A stretch of DNA of 64,000 nucleotides from Piromyces finnis finn. Lineage: Eukaryota; Fungi; Neocallimastigomycota. The DNA is taken from assembly GCA_002104945.1 (NCBI GenBank), contig MCFH01000012.1:682001-746000 (forward strand), in the 5' to 3' direction. The notes under the pieces were generated by a model. That model was not told where the DNA came from. It saw nothing but the letters and a program-made list of their open reading frames with translations, and ran no database searches. Positions 6,101 through 42,897 of the stretch are shown in pieces. Position 1 is the stretch's first letter; each line of letters starts with the position of its first letter. Position numbers and translations under genes: made by a program.

Positions 6101-7444
6101 AACCAATGAGGCAATATAATTTTTACATCCTCATCACTATCTTTAATATTCTAATTATATTTTTTAGCATGAAAAAAAAATATATATATATATAAGTATT
6201 CATGAAAAAAGTATTATTTAAAAACGTAATAACAATTATTAGAGTTAAAATTGACCATTAAAATGTTAATGAATAATAGTAAATAAATAAATAAATAAAT
6301 AAAATAATTACTATTGAATCAAAAAGTGTTATAACGTGTGTTACTCCTTTTTTGTAAGTTGGTGACCATTGACCTCCAAATGTTTCTATACTTGAATATA
6401 TTTCTTTACAATCTCTTTCATCGATCTATTATACATATATATATAAAATATAAAAAATCTTATAAGAATTATGACAGGTAGTTAATATAATTTGATTATT
6501 TGGCTTTTAATGTTTATATATTATTACACCAATGGCTGTTGCAATAACCCCCGAAAAAAATAACGATAGATCTGGGCTAAAGTAAATTGGACTATTTTAA
6601 GAAGATAAATAATCGAGTTAATAAATAAAATAGTGTGTACGTATTAATATTATTTTGAAGAAAAAAAAATTTTTTTTCTTATTCTATGAAATATTATATA
6701 TAAATATAATATACTTTTGAACTATATTTGTTTTAATTGAAATGTCAACCCATGAAGGCTAGAAACATTGGATAGAATAATAAATTTGATTTATTTTATT
6801 ATTTTTTTTTTAAAAAAAAAAAAAGTTAATTTATTATTAACAGCATATAAATATAAATATTAATATAGTAATTTGCTCACAGTAACGATATTAAAATTGG
6901 TAATAGATTTTAATTCATGATTTATATCATTCGTAATATAATAGTTTAAAATTTTATTTTTGTCAATATTGACAGTATCTACAATATTTGCTCCTTCTTT
7001 AATAAGTTTTTCTTTTAACTTTTTATTTTTTCATTAAATTAAATGAAATTCGATAGTATGAAATTTAGATTTTGAATTTGAAAATATAGTTGAATGAATT
7101 ATATAAAATTATTTTAAAATTTATTATGACGTTAAAATTATATAAATGTATATTAGGTTATAAAGTTTATATTATTTTTTTTAAAAAAATTTATACAGAT
7201 AAAATTTACTTTATAATTAAGTGTGAAAGAATTGGATTCATCTAAATAAATATTTAAATTTGAAAATAACTGAAGTTCTATTTTTATTTATTTTTTTTTT
7301 ATTATAAAAAAAATAATAATAATTAGTAATACTAAATTATAATTAACATATTAATTAATTGAATATAATGTGATATATATATTATATTAAAAGTAATCAT
7401 AATAGTAATTTAATCCTACCTGGTAATTTAAAATTATTATCCAT
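3186..7444 (-). CDS. Multi-BRCT DNA-damage scaffold protein, Rtt107/Brc1/PTIP(PAXIP1)-like, many exons
   Basis: Spliced start MDNNFKLP/ELQLFSNLNIYLD. BRCT signatures: LIKEGANIV..IVT/PSWV, YFSPDLSLFFSGV, and a C-terminal tandem BRCT (FNVMFTG..., LENLTFIVTPN...IISSAGGKV, YNVEFLLIGILRQ). Some exon boundaries are approximate. Confidence 0.8.
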
Positions 7445-8484
7445 TTTTTGAAATAATGTAATCCCAATCAAACTATTATGCTATTGCATTTATAATTCAA
7501 ATTTATCTTTATTTATGCAGGTTTATTCAATTCTATTCTTGACAATAATATTCTAAATAATTAAATTAAAAATTTTGGAATTTCTTTTTCTTTTTTTTTT
7601 TTTTTTAAAAAAAATGATTTTTAATTTCAATATGAAATTTAATTATCTAATTCGAAATTAGAAATTTGATTATTTTTTCTCCCTTTTATATATATAATAT
7701 ATTTTAAAAAATATATATATAAAAATCTTTTTTTTTTCAATTAATAAATATAAAACTTTTTTCTATTCTTTTTCTTATTTTATTGTTAAATTTCTTTTTT
7801 AAAATTCTTTCTTTCTTATTGAAGTTTTACTGAGCCTTTAAATATAAAAAGTATTTAATTAAAAAAAAAAAAAAAAATTTTTTTTTTCAAATATCTCCAT
7901 TTAATAAATGAAATTTTTATTTTTTTTTTGAAATTAAAAAAATTAAAGGTTGACTTGAAAAAAAAAAACGAATAATATTTTTCTTTATATATCATTCAAA
8001 CAGACACACATAAAAATAAATACATAGAGCTATACATTTATTTATAGAAATTTGAATGAATAAACCTTGTTTTTTTTTTTTTTTTTTTACATATTTATTT
8101 ATTTATTTTATATATATATATTTCTTAATTATTCTTATTATTCTTATTATTATTATTATTTTTCCAAATGTATTATTATTAAATAGTTGATCTTGTATAT
8201 ATAATAGTAATAAAAAACAAAAACTATATATACATTTAATAAAAAAAAAAAAAAAAAAATAAATAAATAAAAATAAAAATATTTAAAAAACCTTTATTTT
8301 TTTTTTTAATAATGTTATTTTAAAGGAATTAATAATATTAATTATTTGCTAATGGTTAATTATAAATTTCTACAAAAGTTGTTATTTTTGTTTTTTAATT
8401 TTTAAATATTATTCTTTTGGTAATTTCTTTTTTTTTTTTTAAAATTATTATTATTATTGTTGTTGTTGTTGTGGATTATTATTT

Positions 8485-12111
<3,627 letters not shown>

Positions 12112-30853: not shown

Positions 30854-31481
30854 TAATATAACTGATGATATAGTTAACAAATCTATTAATTATTATTTTT
30901 TAGATAATTTAAAGGAAAAGGGAAAGTCTGATAATTTTAAAAATTATTTAATTAATGGCGTAAAATCATTCTGTGTAAATATTATTAGAAATTTAGTTTA
31001 TTTCGATAAACTTTATCTTTATAAAAATACCAATATTAACATTGAATTTTTAAATTATAATTTATATAGTAGAAAATATACAACATATTCTGTATGTAGA
31101 TATTTAAAATTGAATGAAAAGTATGGAATATCTACATACATATATGAAATTATAAATTCTTATATTTTTTATTATTCAGTAATATATAATAAAGAAATTA
31201 GGAAGCCTTTATTGGTTGATAGATCAGTATTAGAATTATATTATGATAAATATCACATCTTACCTAAATTTGTATATTGTATTCCATGTAATTATCATTT
31301 AATAGAGAATATACAATATGGATATAAATATTATAATATTAATTCATTAAACGAGATTTATTATAATAATAGATTTTTAGGAATAGAAAGTTTTGATATT
31401 CCTTATAAATTAATATGTTTTCAAATAAAGAAATTATTCAACATGTATATAATCTAGTTAACATAGAAAAAATAATAATGA

Positions 31482-31543
<62 letters not shown>

Positions 31544-32152
31544 TCTACTTTATACTTTAGAAATGGTATTGATAATAACTTTTCAGTTAACGTATTATAT
31601 GAAAATTATATTTCAAATATATTTATTTGTATTTCTTTTATATTTGATGAAATATTATTAAATAATGATATATTTAATTATATTAATATCAAAGAATGTT
31701 ATAAATATTATAACAAAGAAATTCTTTTTTTACACGGTTTATCCGATCTGAATAAATATAAAATAAAAAATGGTTTTAACACTATCGATTACTTTTATTA
31801 TAATGATAGTATTTATAAAAGTGAAGATTTTGAAAATACTATTAATTTGGAAATTATTTTTGAACTTATTATTTGTAATTTTGTTGATATTTTGCAATAC
31901 AAACTACTTATTTCACACAAATATGATTTACTTAAATCTTTATTAAAATCTTATTATTTATTTATATTATCTTATGGGTCAAAATATAATAGATTATTAC
32001 TTATCCATAATATTTTTATTCCTACACTAAATTTATTAATTATTAAGAAACATGTTAAAGAATACAACATTTATATTTCTTTATTACAGAAATATAATTT
32101 ATATAATTATATTAAATTATATACATATACTCCTCCTAAAAATATTATTTAA
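30774..32152 (+). pseudogene. Intronless paralog 2 with an F-box-like N-terminus (about 459 codons), split by a 1-nt frameshift
   Basis: The 227-aa and 245-aa ORFs join as ..YKLICF/SNKEIIQHVY if one T is added to the T4 run at 31418-31421. Shared blocks with paralog 1: IIRNLVYFD/IIANLIYFD, EIINSYIFYYS/EIINSYIVHYS, QHVYNLVNIEK/DHVYKIVDFER, LYFRNGI/LWCRNGL, IFIPTLNLLIIKKH/VYLPTIELLIINKH. LPFEISNHIYKY fits the F-box core LPxEIxxxIxxY. Confidence 0.75.
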
Positions 32153-32216
32153 ATTTTATAATTATATAAATTGATTTTTTAAAACAATTTATTTTAGTTA
32201 AACAATTTTATTAAAA

Positions 32217-32297
32217 ATGAAAATAATAATTTATTTCTTATTATTTTTGAAGTTATGCATAGTGTATGCTAGTTATGAAGTAACTGGTCGATTAGAA
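32217..32297 (+). pseudogene. Block S of the scrambled secreted-protein gene: start codon and signal peptide
   Basis: ATG at 32217 gives MKIIIYFLLFLKLCIVYA|SYEVTGRLE: basic n-region, hydrophobic h-region, V-Y-A cleavage site. The frame dies 3 codons after 32297. Confidence 0.65.
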
Positions 32298-33112
32298 TTA
32301 CTTTATTAATTTATTAAATAAATTTAAAGACAAATTAGACATATTAGCATCTAGGTCTACATTAAAACCATTTTCAATATCAAAGTCTACATAATATTGA
32401 TTTCCTTTACGTGTATTAACACCAGACATGATAATAAATTTAATAATTTTATTTATATGATTATATTTATTGCCTGTATCGACATCTTCATCAGTTAAAA
32501 CTTTTACCATATAACCTAATATAGATTTAATTCGAACATGTTCATCTAAACAATCATTAATTTCTAAAAACGGTTTTAAATTTTTTTTGTAATTACTATT
32601 TTCTATTGATTCTTCGTAATGAAAAACAAATGCACTAGTTAAACATTTTATGGCTAAATCTTTATAAAATGTTTCACCTTCAAAATTTGATTCTTTAATG
32701 GTATTAAAATATTCAAACATAGATTTTATATAATCACCATTGTTATAAACACTATCCTTAATATGTTGATGGGCTTTGTCAACTATGCTCTCATTTCGAA
32801 TAAATTATCTAAATCATCTTGAAATGGATCATTAACAGATATTTTATTATTATTTTTATTATCTAGAACTCTAATATATTGTTCTAGTCTTTTTTTTGAT
32901 ACTTTTATTTTTGTAACCCTGTTGTTATCCTTACTTATTTCAGGATCAGGAGAAAGAGTAACATCATTATCAACAATTTCAAATTTTTTATCTAAAATTA
33001 GTTTATCCAATGCAAATTTATTATTTAATCTATTTGATTTATTTTCATAATATTTTGTACATAGAAAACCTAGTAATTCACCAAACACTAATTCATTACT
33101 AAACGTAGCCAT
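32298..33112 (-). pseudogene. Block C (C-terminal about 271 codons) of the scrambled gene, inverted
   Basis: The 109-aa and 140-aa ORFs join as ..DDLDNLFE/NESIVDKAHQHIKDSVY..MFEYF with one A restored at 32794-32796. It ends with TAA at 32298-32300, exactly at the S boundary. Confidence 0.65.
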
Positions 33113-35486
33113 AAATAATAACGACTTTCAATTGGAAAACGGCGATGATTTTATAACTAGTCAAATTGAGGAAGCCTATTTTGATAATGTTGGTGTTTTT
33201 TTCCAAAAATTAGATAATATTAACAATAATAATAATGAAGATAATGATATTATTGATATATATAATACACATGTTATCAATGAAGAAGCATTAAGAAAAA
33301 TTAAAAATAAACTTAAAGATATAGTAAAGAATGAAAATATGAATAATGCTATAGATAATTTTGTTAATAATAATATTGGAAATTTAGATGATAGAAGAAA
33401 TAATATTAAAAATAAAATTTTATTTAATAATGACCAAATTAATAATTTATTAGCAAATTTAAATCTTGATGACAATAACGTAAAACAAAAAAATAAACTT
33501 AAACTCGAGTTACATAAATATTTCAGTACATGCTTAAAAACTAATTTAAATGAGAATGGAAAAAGGGTTACGGGAATTAAAGATGATGTTAACGGAATTA
33601 TTCAAAAGGTATTAGGTAATAATCAAATTGATACTGAAGTTATAACTGAATTTTGTGAAGGTATTGTAAGAAATAACGAAGAGTTTAATAATGAATTCAT
33701 TAGAATTGGTAATTATGATTTTGGAAATCTTAGTGAAAATATTATTAATAATATTAATAAATTCAATAAAAAACTTTCAAAAACGATGGCAGATATGTAT
33801 TCTAATACATATTAAAAATTACTCTCATCAAATGATGCAGATTTTATTAAAGTTGTAGATTACACTAATAATAATAATAATAATAATAATAGCGATAATG
33901 ATAACAACAATAATAGGAATAATAATCTCAACACTATTAATCTAGGTTCATATATCATTAATTCTTATTTATCTATGTATAATAGTATCAATTCATTGGA
34001 TGGTAATAATAATTCTGATTATATTGCAGAAAATTTAAAAAATAATATTAGTACAGATAGTGAAATTACAAGAGATGATGATAATATACAATTAAAGATT
34101 TTAAATGCATTTAAAGCTATTATGGGAGAAAACTATTATGATGGAATTAATAATCATTTAGCCAATAATAATAATAAATGTGACTATTCTTATTTAGTTA
34201 AACACAAGAAAAGAAGCATAAATAGCAAGGATTTAACAATAAGCCTTTATACGTTAAATGAAGAGGTTGGATCAGCTAATTCCTTATTGAAGCGTCAAGG
34301 AAATGCTAGATACATTAAAATTAATAAAAGAAATTCTGTTGACCGACATACTGAAAAATCAATATCTGATATTAATACAAAATCAGAAGACGAAAAGGTA
34401 GAAGATTCTTTTTCATTATTAGTAAATTCACTTAAAAATATAAAAACAGTTTCCAAAGATAGCAAGATCTTACCAGATGATGAATATGATGAAAACGAAC
34501 CGACATTCTTTTATAAAAATTCGGATTCCATGGATGACGTATTTGAAAATATAATGGATACGTTTGATGAATTATCTGGAAATTTCGATATCTTATCGAG
34601 CAAATCAGATATGGCGAAAATAATAAATGCTCAAAGGTATCTTAAGCAATACATTGATAGTGAAGAATCGCAAGCATTTAATAATAAGGAATATAACGGA
34701 GAAAAAATGGAAAGGATTAATAATTTAAAAAGCAGATATAACATGTTACACCGTAGATTTTCAGAATCAGACATGAGCAATGACATAAAAGAAAAATTTA
34801 ACAAATCGGTGAAGACGGCCAATTTCGTTGATTTAACTAACTCAAAGGAAAAGCAAGCAGGAAAGGAAATAGCAGTTATTTCCTCAATCAAGAATATGCT
34901 TGGAGAATCTGGTTTAACGCTAGAAACAGATGGGGAATACTTTAAACCGTTTATTGATTCTAGTTCGATTTCTGAAGGTTCCACCAACTATGTTGAAGCT
35001 ATTGATAAGCTATCAGAAAGACTTGACAAAGATGAAAATGCATATTTATTGACATTAGATACCGAAAATTTAATTAAAACAGCAAATCTACTTTATTCCG
35101 ACATTTTAGAAAGAAATGGTAATTCAGGTGATTATGCTGTTACCAAAGCCCTGAATAAATTGTACAAAAAACTATATAATATTGCATCAAAAAAAGAATA
35201 TCAAAATGGAAAGTCCTTTAGAACATTTGAATTTAAATAATGGTAGTAATGATGGTAGTGATAAATAGTGATGGTAGTGATATCACAAACGAAAGTACAC
35301 AACAAGATTATTCTAATTCAAAATTATCAATAAATAAATCTGAACCCGATGAGCTTTGTGACGAGTTTTTTGTATTTATTGATGATGAAGGAAATCCTAC
35401 TAATTATAAATATGCCAAAGATAATATGGATCTTATTTCGTTTAAATGGAGATTGATGATATAAATAATATTTTAGATTATGAATC
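33113..35486 (+). pseudogene. Block B (internal about 790 codons) of the scrambled gene
   Basis: There is no in-frame ATG at its left end. The 227-aa and 421-aa ORFs are the same frame separated by one TAA (33813-33815) and 53 open codons. It continues as ..TFELNNGSNDGSDNSDGSDITNES..DNMDLISFKMEIDDINNILDYES with small homopolymer indels at 35232-35234, 35263-35265 and 35444-35446. Confidence 0.65.
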
Positions 35487-36692
35487 ATGTTAATATCATA
35501 ATACGAATAATCTAAATCATATTTATTAGAAATTAAATTTTCTATATATTGGTCCAATTCAGATATTTCTAAAAACTTACTTTTTAACGCTAATTTGAAT
35601 TTAACTTGATTATAAGAATTTGCAATTTTATTATATATACAATATAATTTATTTAAATGTAATTTATCATCAATATCATATTTGAATATTCCATTAAAGT
35701 TTTTAATTTCTCTAGTTGTCAAAGAACCGTTTTTATTTAAAATATTTTTTGTTATATAGTTTAAATTATATACCATAAATCTACTATCAATTACATCTGT
35801 ACTATATTGGTAGTTTTTTTTTGTATCTTTATTTATTGTATCCATAGAATATTCATCTTCATCATATATTTTATTATAATTATTTCTTAATACCAAATCA
35901 TTAATAATAGAAATATACTTATTTATATCATCAGAATAATAATCACCATAATAAATGGTAAATTCTTTATTACTAATGATATCTTTTAAATCTTTAAAAT
36001 AGTCCATTAGTGATTTTCCATTTATAACATTTAATGAATCATCCAAATCAGTAATAATAAATTCGTATTCATTTGTAATTTCATACAATATTTCATCTGT
36101 AGTTTTTGTTAATAACCCCTTTTCATTAATTTCAAGAGGAAAAGTAGTATACTTTGATAATTTCATTAATTCATAAGATAATTGATTATCAGGATAATAA
36201 TTAGGGTAATAGGTAATATGTAGTTTATCATCTAAATTAATAGTAATATCATAATAAGTAGTAATATAGGACATGATTTCACTTTTGTTTGCAAATAATT
36301 TATTAAACATACGTACAATATTATTATAATCATCCACATTATCGGTATTATCAATATCAGTAGATATAGAGATAATGTTCTTGTGTAATTCTATAATCAT
36401 AAAAATCTTTTCCTTATCTAAAGTATATTTTAATTTTTTGTACTTTTCATCTGTACCATCTTTCTCATTTTTATTTTCATTAAAAATCAAATGCTTGATT
36501 TCTAACATAATATCAGAATAGACATTAAATAGAGATACTGCATTTTTGGACATCGAATTTAGTTCATTTAAATAATATACATTATCCGGATTTAAATTCT
36601 TTCAAAATATTAATATACTTTTCATAATCTACAGGAATGTCGTATCCACGTCCAATAGCAGAATATGCTGGATAATTAAGGACATCTTCATT
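35487..36692 (-). pseudogene. Block A (N-terminal about 401 codons after the signal peptide) of the scrambled gene, inverted
   Basis: The 408-aa ORF extends upstream as NEDVLNYPAYSAIGRGYDIPVDYEKYINILKE/LNPDNVYYLNELNSMSKN with one extra base at 36594-36596. Its last about 54 annotated codons (35327-35486) are only the antisense of block B. Confidence 0.65.
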
Positions 36693-36832
36693 TTTGGGTA
36701 TTGTTGTTGAACTACTAATTCAACGAGTAGCAGTAAAATTTACTCTTAATAAATTGTATTAATTACATACACTTTTATTATACTCATACCTTTCTTATTT
36801 TATTAAATCGAAAAAAAAGTATAGTCATGTCT
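36693..36832. repeat. 140-bp direct repeat, copy 1
   Basis: Matches 40032-40174 apart from one substitution, a 4-nt duplication and A8 vs A7. Confidence 0.92.
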
Positions 36833-37642
36833 TCCTTACACCAATACTAATATCGAAATAAAAAGAAAAAACATTTTCTCATTTTAATAGTTTTTAGCTA
36901 TTTTTTTTTTTTTAATAATTCATCATGCCTGCCTTGTTACACCAAATTTTTATTAATTCATTTGTCCACACCCGCCGAAATTTTTAATTAATACCTTGAC
37001 CATAAAAAAAAAAAGAATTTAACCATTAAAATTTAAATTTAAAAATATATATATATTCCATTTCTTTTCTTTCTTTTTTTTTTTTTATTTGTTTCTTCAA
37101 AACAATCAACAATTAAATACTAAACATTCATTAAACGTTAAATACTTTTTTTTTTATCATTATTTATAATTGTAATAAAGGTATTTTTTAAGAATGAGAT
37201 TTAATAAAAAAAAAAAAATTAGAAATTTCAAAATCATTAAAATTTTGTCAATCTTTATTATAATGTTATTGTTCAACAAAAAACAGAAATAAAATAATAT
37301 TATAGTGGTCACTAAATAAAAAAAAAACTTAATATTTATAATATAATATATTTTTATACTATTTATGATAATGTAACAATGTAGCAATAATTATAATTGC
37401 AATAATAAATAAAATTATCAATTTAAATTTAATTATTATATATCAAATTTGTAATTGACACTACTTTAATTATAGGATTGTTTCTCATTTTCTCAATTTT
37501 TTTTATATATAATAATGTCCTTTATATAATAATAAATATATATTTTGAATATCATTTATTAATAGAAACATGAAATTAAAAACTTTAATTTTATTTATAT
37601 ATATTTTTTTAATATATAAAAAAAAAAAAAAAAAGTAACAAA

Positions 37643-38073
37643 ATGTACGAATTACCAAGTGTTTGTAATGATAAACATGCACAAGTTGGTGCTGTTTTAG
37701 ATGAAAATTACCAAGGAAAGCTTTTTAAGCCAATTACCATAAAAAACATTACTATCAAAAATAGAATTTTTGTTGCTCCGATGTAATTTTATTTATAATA
37801 AAAATATATACTTTCATAAATAATTATTAAATCTTTTTGAAATTATTTTTATTTTTTTTTATAGGGATATGTATAGTGCCAAGGATGGTATTCCAAATTC
37901 TTTTCATTTAGTTCATTATGGTAATTTGGCTCAAAGAGGTGCTGGTTTAATTATGGTTGAAGCAACTTCTGTTCAAGAAGTTGGTCGTATATCACCATGT
38001 GATCTTGGTTTATGGAAAGATGAACAAGTAAATCATTACAAACCAATGCTCGACTATATTCATTTTAATGGTA

Positions 38074-38106
<33 letters not shown>

Positions 38107-39125
38107 GTAATGTATTAACAGTAGTAATAATAACAATAGTAATAGTAGTCGTCGAGAATGCATAATAAATAATTTTTTCCCCTTAAATATTTAAAGGTGC
38201 TTATGCTGGAGTTCAACTTGCTCATGGTGGTAGAAAAGTAAAATAAAATAAAATAAAATATGATAGAATAAAATAAAAAAAAAATAAGAAATATACATTC
38301 TCATATGCATATATAATTTATATTAAAAATTAAATCAAATATAAAAAAATAATATAGTCATCTGGTACTTGTCGTTTAATTAAGGGAAATAGTATGGCAA
38401 CTGCTGAAGAAAATGGTTGGCCAGATCAAATTGTAGCACCATCTCCTATTGCTTATGATGAAACATTTGCCGTACCAAAAGAACTTTCAAAAGAACAAAT
38501 TAAGCAAGTTGTCAAAGATTTTGGTGAAGCAGCCAGAAGAGCCAATGAAGCAGGTTTTGATGTTGTTGAGATTCATGCAGCTCATGGTTATTTAATTCAC
38601 GAATTCTTATCACCAATTACCAATAAGCGTATAGATGAATATGGAGGTTCATTTGAAAATCGTATTCGTATCTGTCTTGAGGTTATTGAAAGTGTAAAAG
38701 CACAATGGCCATCCGAAAAGCCAATATTTATTCGTTTTAGTTGTGAAGATTATGTAGAAGGTGGATGGAATCTTGAAGAAACTGCAAAATTATGTACTAT
38801 TGTCAAAAAGATGGGTATCGATTTAGTAGATTGTTCTTCTGGTGGACTTTCTGCTGAACAAAAAATTACTGCTTTAGTTCCAGGATATCAAGTTCCATTT
38901 GCTAAAGAAATTAAAAAACAAAATCCAGATTTAATTGTTAGTTCTGTTGGATTAATTACCAATGGTAAACAAGCAGAGGAAATATTAGAAAGTGGAGCAT
39001 CAGATGTTATTACTGTTGGTAGAGCATTTTTAAGAGATTCCTCCACCGTTTTAGTATGGGCTGATGATCTTGGTGTTGAAATTCAATGGCCAAGTCAATA
39101 TGTTCGTGGTAAATTACCTAAATAA
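37643..39125 (+). CDS. NADH:flavin oxidoreductase / Old Yellow Enzyme, YqjM(NamA)-like, 4 exons
   Basis: LFKPITIKNITIKNRIFVAPM/DMYSAKDG..HYGNLAQRGAGLIMVEATSV..GRISPCDLGLW, GVQLAHGGRK, GFDVVEIHAAHGYLIHEFLSPITNKRIDEYGGSFENR, PGYQVPFAKEIK, VGRAFLRD. Intact reading frame with three GT-AG introns. Confidence 0.93.
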
Positions 39126-39709
39126 AGAAAAAAAACTTTTTATTAAGTTTATATTTAAAAATTATCTTTTATTTTTTTTAAAAAAAAAAAAAAAGTATTA
39201 AAACATCATTAATTATTTATTATGAAAATAAATAAGTAATAGTAAATAGGAATAAGTAAGAATAAGTATAGTAATAATAATAATAAAAAGAAGAAGAAGA
39301 AGAAGAAGAAGAAGCAATAATATTAAATAATAAAAATAAATGTAAATGATAAAAATATAAAGAAAAATAATTAAAAAGTAATGCAATGTAATCTATTAAT
39401 GAAATAAAAATTTAAATATTTAATAAATATTTAATAAATAAATATTCTTATTTTTTCAGTTAAAAACATATATTGATAAAAGAATGTATTATTTTTATTT
39501 CTAAGATTTCAATTAATAATAAAAAAGAATTGATTTTTTTTTTTTTTTTATTTTTTAATAATCACTCTTTTTATATATATATAAAAGTTAATAATAGATA
39601 ATAATAATAATATAAAAAATAAATATTTATAGCAAATTATAACTACAATAATAAGTTATAAATATTAACATAAATAGTAATATAAAAAATGATTCATAAT
39701 AATAGTAAT

Positions 39710-39749
39710 AATGATAAACTTCCAACCTTTGACTTCATGTAAACTTTAC
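39710..39749 (+). repeat. 40-bp dispersed copy of an ataxin-10 exon/intron junction (source 19053-19092)
   Basis: aatgataaacttccaacctttgac[t/c]tcatgtaaactt[t/c]ac, 38/40 identical. Confidence 0.88.
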
Positions 39750-39768
39750 TTGATAAAAAATTAAAGTT

Positions 39769-40100
39769 TACGAAGGAACACCATTTATTGACGGTAATAG
39801 CGGAACTTCTAACCAAAATCATGCCTTTTGTTATTGGCCAACAATAGATAATGTTCAAAAGGTTTGAAGCAACAACAAAGAGCGTTAATGCTAAAAAAAC
39901 AATAAGACAGACCAGGATAGTCCGCGCAACCGATGAAGATCATAATTTTAATTTATGACAAAATTTTGAACTTTGACTCCGTATCCCATTGGAAGTCAAA
40001 TGCAATTATTATACTTATTTTAAGCTGTTAGTTTGGGTATTGTTGTTGAACTACTAATTCAACGAGTAGCAGTAAATTTTACTCTTAATAAATAAATTGT
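39769..40100 (+). pseudogene. Degenerate coding relic of unknown family, running into direct-repeat copy 2
   Basis: Locally GC-richer, with protein-like frames YEGTPFIDGNSGTSNQNHAFCYWPTIDNVQKV* and ..DEDHNFNL*QNFEL*LRIPLEVKCNYYTYF, then LGIVVELLIQRVAVNFTLNK*. Several stops and frameshifts; no family recognised. Confidence 0.35.
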
Positions 40101-40174
40101 ATTAATTACATACACTTTTATTATACTCATACCTTTCTTATTTTATTAAATCGAAAAAAAGTATAGTCATGTCT
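40032..40174. repeat. 143-bp direct repeat, copy 2
   Basis: See copy 1 at 36693-36832. Confidence 0.92.
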
Positions 40175-42897
40175 AATAGTGGCTTTCTTACTTTAACTAA
40201 AATGACTCGAATACATTATACCCAATTTTTATTCATTTGTGTTTAACATATTTTTTTAATTTTATTTTTTTTATAACATGTATTATTATAATTAATAAAG
40301 TTTAAAAACATTTAATGCCTTTTAAAAAAAAAAAGTACAATTTATTCTATAGTAAACAATACTTTTATAAATTTTATAATAAATGAATACAAGTAATTAT
40401 TTTCTTACTCTTATCCTTATATATAATAATATAATATGATAATCAACCTATTTACATTGGATTTTATTTAATAAGCATTGAAATATAAAAATTATTTTTC
40501 TTATAATATTTAATAAATAGTTATATTTCATAAAGCATAAAGCATACTATATTTAAGTAAAATTATATTTTATTTTTTGAGGTTTTAAGGTAAATAAATG
40601 AAAAAAAGAAATTAAGTCATAATATTTATTATTTATTAATATTACTTTATATTACATTAAAATTAGTAAATCTATGCAAGCAAGTAATCATAAAGAGAAT
40701 TGGTTTAAATAAAAGACTAATATAGCACTACCATTACATTTTCTAATAACGGTAACTCTTAATATAATGGAAATATATTTCCTTTATCCTTTATAAAATA
40801 ATATTTTATTTGTACATTATGCATTATTATTTCATAATCATTTATATATTCAATTAAAATAACATTATAGTTATAATTTTAAAATTTAAAAAAAAAAAAT
40901 AGTTTAATACTATTGATCTATTGATAATAAATAAAAGTAAATGTTTTTTTTATTTTCGTTTATTATATATTTGTATAAATAATACTTTTGTTTAAATTTG
41001 TGAAATAAACTTAATTAATAAAAAGAAATAGGTAGGTAGAAAGGTAGAGATAGAGTAAAAGGTTTTTTTTTTTTTTTTTACAAGTAAAATTATACATTAA
41101 AAAAGAATTCATTAATTAAAATTTTAATTTATTTTTAATTTATCTTATTTATATATTATAGTGTATTGTAATATACTTTTATTGATTTTTTTCCAAAAGA
41201 ATGTAACACCAACCATTTGAACGATTTTCAATTGAGAATATTAATAAATTCTTACCAGCATTCGCCAATAAATTTCATTTTATTTGGTATTCTACCCATC
41301 CACATGAAACCTAATCCTTTAAATAATTTAAAAAAAAGAATCCACAAAAATCTTTTTTTTATATATTAAAAAAGCTTATTTATATTAAATTAAATTAAAA
41401 ATTCGAAAATTAATATAAATAGATTTCTTTAAATTCTTTTATAAAAATCTAGGCAAACAAACAAACGCAACATGCTACTTTCACTTTTTTTTCTTTACCT
41501 ATTAAAAGAAGAAAAGGAATTCGTTTTTTTTATCATTATAGTAGTTAACAATTATAAAATAATCTATTATTTTAAAAGTTTAATAACTTACAATGTTAAA
41601 AAAACTATTATATGTTATATTATAAAAAAAACAATCCATATTGTATTATACAATTAAATTATATTATTAGTAACTAAATTTTTTATCAATGGAAGGTGCA
41701 TATTATTTGAAAAAATTCTTCCTATTCGTATTTATTATTAATTTATTCATATATTTAAAAATAGTAATGAAATTTTAATGGTTTTTAAATCTTTTATTTC
41801 ATCTAAATTGTTTCTGTGAGATTATTCGTTCTATATTTATGGAATGCCAGTTTTATTGTAATGCCAATTGATCCATAGAGTTACTATTAAGTCTGCTAAC
41901 TACGTTGCTGCTAACGTTGCTGCCTTGTTCTTTGTTCTTTTAACAATGAATTGTTATTATTGTTCATTGTAGATTTAATGAAATATTCATATATTGTAGT
42001 CTATTATTAATAAATAACAATTCAATTATATTTTTAATTTTAAATATATTTTTATAGATTTACCTTTTAAATCCAATTGATTATTGGAGGATATTGAAAT
42101 AGTTTTAATTAAATAAATATATGGAAATTTAATTAAATTAAATCTTCATAGTAATATAATATACTTGGAATAAATTAATAATATATAAATTATATTTAAA
42201 ATAGTATATTAATTAATATAAAATGTATTACTTTATTAAGAAATTTTTAAATTAAAATATTAAAAGAATTGAACAAAAATGATAATGTAATACAATTTCA
42301 ATTATATTGTATTATATATTATAATAAATAATAATATATGTAATAAATAATTAAATTAATAAATAATTCAAATTAATAAATATTATATTAATGAATAAAT
42401 CCATAGATTATTAAATAAATAATAAATAAGTAAATGAATTAAAATTTAAATAAATCATCAATATATTACTAGTAATTTATTTGTTTTATTCATTTATTTT
42501 ATATTCATGAATCTATTGATTTATTTAATTTATTAATTATACATTCATTTATTAAATTTATATTCATAAAATGTCATCCTAATTTTATTATTTATGGTTT
42601 AAAAAAAAAAAAGTCTTTTTTTTATTTTCTTAACTTTTTTTAAATTTAATGTTAATAAAAATTCAAAAGAATTATTTTAAAAATTAAAGATTTTATTTTA
42701 TTTTATAATAAAATAAAACATTTTTTTTTTAATTTGTAAATAATAATAAAAAAAAAATAAAAATAAAGAAAAGCAATTTATCCTTTTTTATTAATTTGAT
42801 ATAAAAAGAGTATTTTTATTTATCATTTTTTTATTCTTATATTTTACCATTGACTTTTCTCTATTTTTTTTTTTTTTTTATAAATTGAATTTTTTAT

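Follow-up and report, generated by a model that had tools for sequence, protein, structure and literature searches.

Fragments of two convergent secreted-protein pseudogenes and a probable 0.8-kb inversion at one locus of the anaerobic gut fungus Piromyces finnis

Gene pieces and open reading frames at the locus

Positions 32217–36692 of a 64,000-nucleotide stretch of Piromyces finnis DNA (contig MCFH01000012.1; the whole stretch is referred to here as the window) hold a series of open reading frames (ORFs) on alternating strands, with a local G+C content of 23.5%, across which the public annotation of the P. finnis assembly places five unrelated gene models. The two genes from which these frames derive are both pseudogenes, and the small annotated genes are their fragments. 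One belongs to a secreted-protein family that we call B and lies mainly on the plus strand, while the other, on the minus strand, belongs to a second such family, A. The present layout is most probably explained by two dead, convergent secreted-protein genes that underwent one 0.8-kb inversion, together with deletions and small lesions.

From left to right, the locus begins with block S (32217–32302, plus strand), which supplies the B-family gene with its start codon, its signal peptide and the first codons of the mature protein and ends in the left copy, GAATTACT, of an inverted repeat. It is followed on the minus strand by block C (32303–33071), an inverted segment corresponding to the N-terminal region of the B-family protein, with one frameshift near 32798–32804. 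The right repeat copy, AGTAATTC (33072–33079), marks the right inversion breakpoint. Block B (33078–35440, plus strand), which represents the middle of the B-family gene, breaks off after ...DNMDLIS and includes a tract of high identity to a related gene (34401–35440). At 35438–35440 it meets the A-family gene tail to tail, with the triplet TCG/CGA common to both sides. Block A itself (35441–36692, minus strand) is a gene fragment, and immediately beyond it lies R1 (36693–36832, plus strand), the left copy of a 140-bp direct repeat.

Each block other than S comprises more than one stop-free stretch. Specifically, C contains C1 (33127>32786) and C2 (32804>32301), B contains B1 (33051–33812), B2 (33816–35237) and B3 (35237–35461), and A contains A1 (36719>36585) and A2 (36601>35330). 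The observed lengths of 474, 424, 254 and 168 codons exceed chance: when the region was shuffled 300 times, the longest stretch had a mean of 77 codons and reached at most 146. The 421-aa ORF at 33975–35240 is on record only for contig MCFH01000012.1 of assembly GCA_002104945.1, which a review table assigns to P. finnis (PMC6690862), and Rfam and tRNA scans of 32200–40400 gave no match.

Much of this geometry had been described in an earlier note on the same DNA, made from the letters alone. Translation bears out its lone signal peptide (ORF 32217–32306), which stops after 30 codons; the stop-free map and the shuffles uphold its alternating strands; and the left end of B indeed has no ATG. The stop codon of C (TAA, 32298–32300) does lie at the left breakpoint, and the break at 36692/36693 is a real discontinuity at the edge of the direct repeat, as R1 begins at 36693. 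The note had also anticipated that automatic annotation would call five or six unrelated hypothetical genes here, and five models are in place.

Gene order and family membership in relatives

The relationship of S, C and B was revealed by metagenome contigs (L013–L015) reached via two short proteins that are ~62% identical to B2. One of these contigs, L014, comes from a related anaerobic fungus and is syntenic with the window, whose upstream flank (31029–32135) matches L014 6752–7789 with 60–64% amino-acid identity. The counterparts of the window blocks follow one another on a single strand of L014 in the order S (7860–7931; 63% identity over 24 aa), C1 (7923–8211), C2 (8207–8541), B1 (8521–9135), B2 (9289–10745) and B3 (10767–10943), and beyond B3 homology to a full-length B-family protein (P0012, below) goes on to 11402. 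At the S–C1 join, the window reads ...TGRLE-LL in S and ...G-ELLGFLCTKYYEN in C1; L014 reads ...TGRLEILGVLFTKLYEN in a single frame. Since S, C and B are colinear on one strand in L014, C encodes the N-terminal part of the B gene, and the three blocks belong to one gene. The possibility that C formed a C-terminal tail, whether on A or on B, was also considered and rejected, as it gave no colinear BLAST match and L014 puts C at the N-terminus.

The B-family gene of L014 (7800–11500), seen also in L013, L015, L016 and L017, is uninverted and contains about ten frame changes. These frame changes recur gap-free in three other independent assemblies, and the L014-type gene is therefore dead too.

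More complete members of the B family were found by a HMMER search with B2. It returned the hypothetical protein P0003 (PIROE2DRAFT_16904; 1462 aa) from Piromyces sp. E2, to which the match is confined to B2 and B3 and covers residues 682–1059. The same two blocks match residues 953–1308 of its 1727-aa paralogue P0012 (PIROE2DRAFT_10418, also Piromyces sp. E2) and 734–1112 of a 1528-aa gene on L021, a 42-kb Logan contig. Against P0003 and P0012, E values for B range from 1e-46 to 1e-52; amino-acid identity of B2/B3 is 39% to the Piromyces sp. E2 proteins and 86–95% to the L021 gene. All three relatives, P0012 with a signal peptide of its own among them, carry a signal peptide at the N-terminus and lack any Pfam domain. 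Their likeness to the window lies in the conserved C-terminal half of the family (~800 aa), which aligns colinearly with B2 and B3 and of which the window keeps only the first ~380 residues. In contrast to these relatives, the window gene has an inverted 5′ end, lacks its last ~416 codons and is frameshifted, and the N-terminal half of window B resembles L014 only, not P0012 or the L021 gene. The B2 region that carries an ILP.D.YD...P motif (34250–34550) gives a second match at P0003 1169–1360 (E ~1e-3), which suggests that the conserved half may hold an internal repeat.

With respect to block A, the evidence points to a separate gene. A-family proteins are secreted proteins of about 720–775 aa with their own signal peptide, and intact members have a start codon of their own and lack introns. 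In both Piromyces sp. E2 loci examined (L011 and L012), the gene that A1 and A2 match is distinct from the B gene and lies upstream of it in the same orientation; in L012 it consists of a single intronless ORF of 772 codons that has both a signal peptide and a stop codon of its own. Runs of N lie between the A and B genes in L011 and L012, so that their relative orientation there is less certain. The family includes PIROE2DRAFT_10417 (P0013, 776 aa) and PIROE2DRAFT_16907 (P0014) in Piromyces sp. E2, as well as other full-length proteins (P0015, 723 aa; P0016; P0017), these three having lengths of 690–772 aa. A1 and A2 align to P0013–P0017 at about residues 180–218 and 335–695 (E 1e-47 to 1e-79), and the motifs NYPAYSAIGRGYD, DEYNNIVRM, YYGDYYSD and LKYYLY.QSPF occur in window A in the same order as in these relatives. 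Unlike them, window A is a fragment without start, signal peptide or 3′ end, and corresponds roughly to codons 182–218 and 335–695 of P0015.

A and B genes are adjacent in three contexts, namely in tandem in L011 and L012 and convergent, without a gap in the sequence, in L021, where the intact A gene (P0015) and the intact B gene are 590 bp apart. The two families may therefore form a functionally linked pair. A further metagenome contig, L001, was the first A-like locus found; it has no B and did not settle the gene order. It carries only the central third of an A-family gene (6718–7476), preceded by stops and followed by unrelated sequence, and is probably a further decayed copy.

In terms of function, a Pfam scan of all block translations and of the full-length A and B relatives returned nothing above threshold, and a protein atlas search for both families gave only scores of 0.5–0.6, which are meaningless, and no relative. 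AlphaFold2 models were mostly helical, with predicted local distance difference test (pLDDT) values of 52.5 for the A family and 57.2 for the conserved B half, and Foldseek template-modeling (TM) scores by query were ≤0.2, which gives no fold assignment. A and B are families of secreted, lineage-specific, uncharacterised proteins.

The inversion, the small lesions and the deletions

Compared with L014, the window carries a single in-place inversion of ~769 bp (32303–33071). An 8-bp inverted repeat is present at its two breakpoints, as GAATTACT at 32295–32302 and AGTAATTC at 33072–33079; an inverted match of at least 8 nt, with 3 nt of slack, is found for 0.85% of random site pairs in the window (P ~0.0085). 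When 32303–33071 is flipped back in silico, one 72-aa high-scoring segment pair spans the S–C1 junction, the N-terminal alignment to L014 becomes continuous, and the un-inverted S–C junction regains an open frame that aligns with L014. At the other end, C2 finishes with ...NKLIK and B resumes with SNSPNTNSLL, the L014 counterpart being ...EKLIKSNRLNSML; a tblastx comparison places this C2–B1 join out of frame, with 4 extra nt relative to L014. The longest inverted repeat at the corresponding breakpoints of L014 is 6 nt, and there was therefore no ancestral long repeat. An inversion at so short a repeat should leave inverted matches at its two breakpoints and a relative with the un-inverted order, and both are found here. 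L014 is itself a pseudogene and shares only 35–60% identity with the window, which limits the placement of the breakpoints to a precision of a few nucleotides.

Inversions at short inverted repeats or microhomology arise by end joining or by replication template switching, as in microhomology-mediated break-induced replication (MMBIR) and fork stalling and template switching (FoSTeS). The present case resembles such events in its two breakpoints, its 8-bp inverted match, the slight imprecision at one junction and the existence of a colinear relative; it differs in that the junctions show neither filler DNA nor a duplication, and a mechanism is not readable from one end-state sequence. We infer that the B-family gene, which would have run from S (32217) through C into B, had C flipped in place between the 8-bp repeats, most likely because DNA at the short inverted repeat was broken and rejoined or because replication switched template there. 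As a consequence of the flip, the frame of the signal peptide closes after 30 codons and the ~270 codons of the N-terminal region lie on the opposite strand. The signal peptide, which is continuous with the rest of the protein in L014, is cut off from B in the window by the inverted C.

The B copy has suffered further damage, comprising two frameshifting insertions, an in-frame stop, the C1/C2 frameshift and the out-of-frame C2–B1 join. The stop is a TAA at 33813–33815. One insertion is an extra A at 35189, relative to L021, inside a homopolymer run, and the other is a frame-shifting 22-nt tandem duplication (35244–35265) that is absent from L021. Where a working B-family gene would have an intact frame, the window copy shows a single in-frame stop, four or more frame changes and a truncated 3′ end.

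The right half of the locus is best understood by comparison with L021. In blastn alignments, window 34401–35440 matches L021 15028>14012 with 92.7% DNA identity, 35456–36589 matches 12082>11015 with 64%, and 36586–36694 matches 10653>10545 with 98%. The window lacks L021 12083–14011, a 1.9-kb segment containing the last ~416 codons of B, the spacer and the last ~30 codons of A. B homology ends with ...ATTTCG at 35440 and A homology ends with CGA at 35438–35440, such that the two sides have three bases in common at the join. The A2 alignment runs through 35486/35487, where the earlier note had placed the A–B break: the window reads MIHNLKYYLYHQSPFKR, Piromyces sp. E2 reads MLNHLKYYLYNQSPFTR, and P0016 has NQSPFKR. 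A (...HQSPFKR) consequently extends to 35438, 47 bp past that position, and the proposed join YYDIN|INNNDFQ is wrong. The real A/B junction lies tail to tail at 35438–35440 and, relative to L021, represents a deletion rather than an inversion.

Within A, 361 bp equivalent to L021 10654–11014 have been lost, producing a frameshift near 36586–36589. The first 181 codons are also missing, with homology beginning at 36692 beside R1, as are the last 30–77 codons. The first 181 codons of A are absent from the whole 64-kb window, and counterparts of L021 12083–14011 and 10654–11014 occur nowhere else in it. In all, three deletions would account for these losses: the 1.9-kb deletion at the B–A junction, with a join sharing TCG, through which both genes lost their 3′ ends; that of the first 181 codons of A, with its edge at R1; and the 361 bp inside A. 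What is left of the A gene is a 1.25-kb minus-strand fragment.

The repeat that borders this fragment occurs at 36693–36832 and 40032–40174, the copies being ~97% identical with one 4-nt indel. The pair encloses an Old Yellow Enzyme gene, the left copy abuts the 5′-truncated end of A, and the repeat matched neither a tRNA nor any Rfam family. In L014, a stretch of 37 nt that weakly matches part of the repeat in inverted orientation follows the B gene at a distance of ~650 bp downstream.

Interpretation of the locus

The scheme on which the locus had originally been read is a single secreted-protein gene of ~1,490 codons, in the order S-A-B-C, that was scrambled either in two steps, an outer inversion of 4.4 kb and a re-inversion of 2.4 kb within it, or in one multi-switch repair event. 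We consider this extremely improbable, even though it accommodates the alternating strands and spacerless blocks and its summed length is near that of the 1462-aa P0003. The order in the relative is S-C-B; A is a member of a different family that has a start and a signal peptide of its own, and the homology of A crosses the proposed A–B break; B homology starts at ~33078, not at 33113; and the P0003 match covers B2 and B3 only. The earlier note was right that a secreted-protein gene had been broken by inversion and that S and B share a gene, as L014 confirms, but A is not part of it, and one 0.8-kb inversion plus deletions suffices where nested inversions had been invoked. Two of its four breakpoints hold, 32297/32298 falling within the 8-bp repeat and 36692/36693 at R1; that at 33112/33113 is about 35–40 nt off (really 33071–33079), and that at 35486/35487 is really at 35438–35440. 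Its S-A join fails because S continues into C1 in L014, and its B-C join because C precedes B there; the 3-bp CAT/ATG microhomology between 33110–33112 and 35487–35489 gains no support. The note had said that homologues with the blocks in another order, or as separate genes, would count against a colinear S-A-B-C ancestor, and that is what is found: S-C-B in L014, and A and B as separate genes in L011, L012 and L021.

Two dead convergent genes with one small inversion remain the preferred reading, against which several observations weigh. The inversion rests on one long-read assembly; look-ups in other assemblies found no exact match to the products of three window ORFs, two of which span a junction; and two metagenome scans were blank, the pattern of the first ending in the left repeat and that of the second lying immediately ahead of the B–A junction. 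It is therefore conceivable, if unlikely, that the 0.8-kb inversion, and perhaps the single-base frameshifts too, are long-read assembly errors and that the real chromosome is colinear S-C-B, especially as the extra A at 35189 in a homopolymer is a typical consensus error. The 22-nt duplication and the 361-bp and 1.9-kb deletions are not error types of this kind, and 97% of sampled 31-mers are present in the contigs of one DNA run, a figure that is not junction-specific and comes from a run that may be the assembly's own source. Long reads moreover span 0.8 kb many times, and an inversion would enter the consensus only if the majority of reads contained it. Of the 31-mers sampled from 31600–37400, 68% were found in the contigs of one RNA-type public run, again not specifically at the junctions; this may reflect transcription of much of the dead locus or genomic DNA in the RNA library.

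The history of the right half is less straightforward. A 60-nt identity profile and alignment against L021 reveal an in-frame jump from ~50% to ~95% in B at ~34400 (L021 ~15028) and a drop from 98% to ~60% in A at ~36512 (L021 ~11092). Central A, at only ~60% between flanks of 98%, is not explained by a simple deletion history. No A gene is present within 1.25 kb downstream of B in L014, and the L021 flanks are not syntenic with the window; in-place deletion at the B–A junction is therefore not proven, and the right half may have been copied from a paralogous pair. Specifically, ectopic recombination or a template switch could have brought in 34401–36692 from a paralogous B/A pair, one end lying in the conserved B region near 34400 and the other joined non-homologously at R1. 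This is compatible with the two-gene explanation, and the identity jump at 34400 speaks for it, but the low identity of central A does not, and no donor was found in a search that did not reach the rest of the P. finnis genome. We treat copying as a genuine but tentative possibility, and in-place decay and the order of events remain inferred. The abrupt in-frame switches look like segmental gene conversion among paralogues. Together with the unrelated N-terminal halves among family members, this mosaic identity is the basis for a broader proposal, that A and B are a linked secreted pair with hypervariable parts that diversify by segmental gene conversion, the decayed copies serving as donor or acceptor cassettes or as a record of the process. 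Such copies would bear a loose likeness to the pseudogene archives for surface-protein variation in some parasites, but we rate this proposal as decidedly improbable.

The position of C directly behind a signal peptide, with inverted repeats at both ends, also recalls site-specific invertible switches such as Hin/Gin, Fim and the 2-micron FLP system, in which a coding segment is flipped between inverted repeats. That C is a programmed on/off switch for the secreted protein, turned by a recombinase acting on these repeats, nevertheless has almost no likelihood. The window repeats, at only 8 bp, are far shorter than those of the known systems; L014 has no matching repeat, its longest being 6 nt; and no recombinase appeared among the block translations scanned against Pfam, a scan outside which the neighbouring genes lie. 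Frameshifts, stop and 3′ truncation would, in addition, leave the gene dead in either orientation.

Taken together, these observations make S, C and B one gene and turn five annotated P. finnis hypothetical genes into pieces of two pseudogenes. The rearrangement is of a known kind, simpler than the nested inversions first proposed, and opens no long-standing question. It does offer a clear natural example of how a segment of less than a kilobase can invert at an inverted repeat of 8 bp, readable only because a related fungus keeps the colinear order. For the anaerobic gut fungi, the analysis defines two uncharacterised, physically linked families of secreted proteins whose members share a patchwork similarity.

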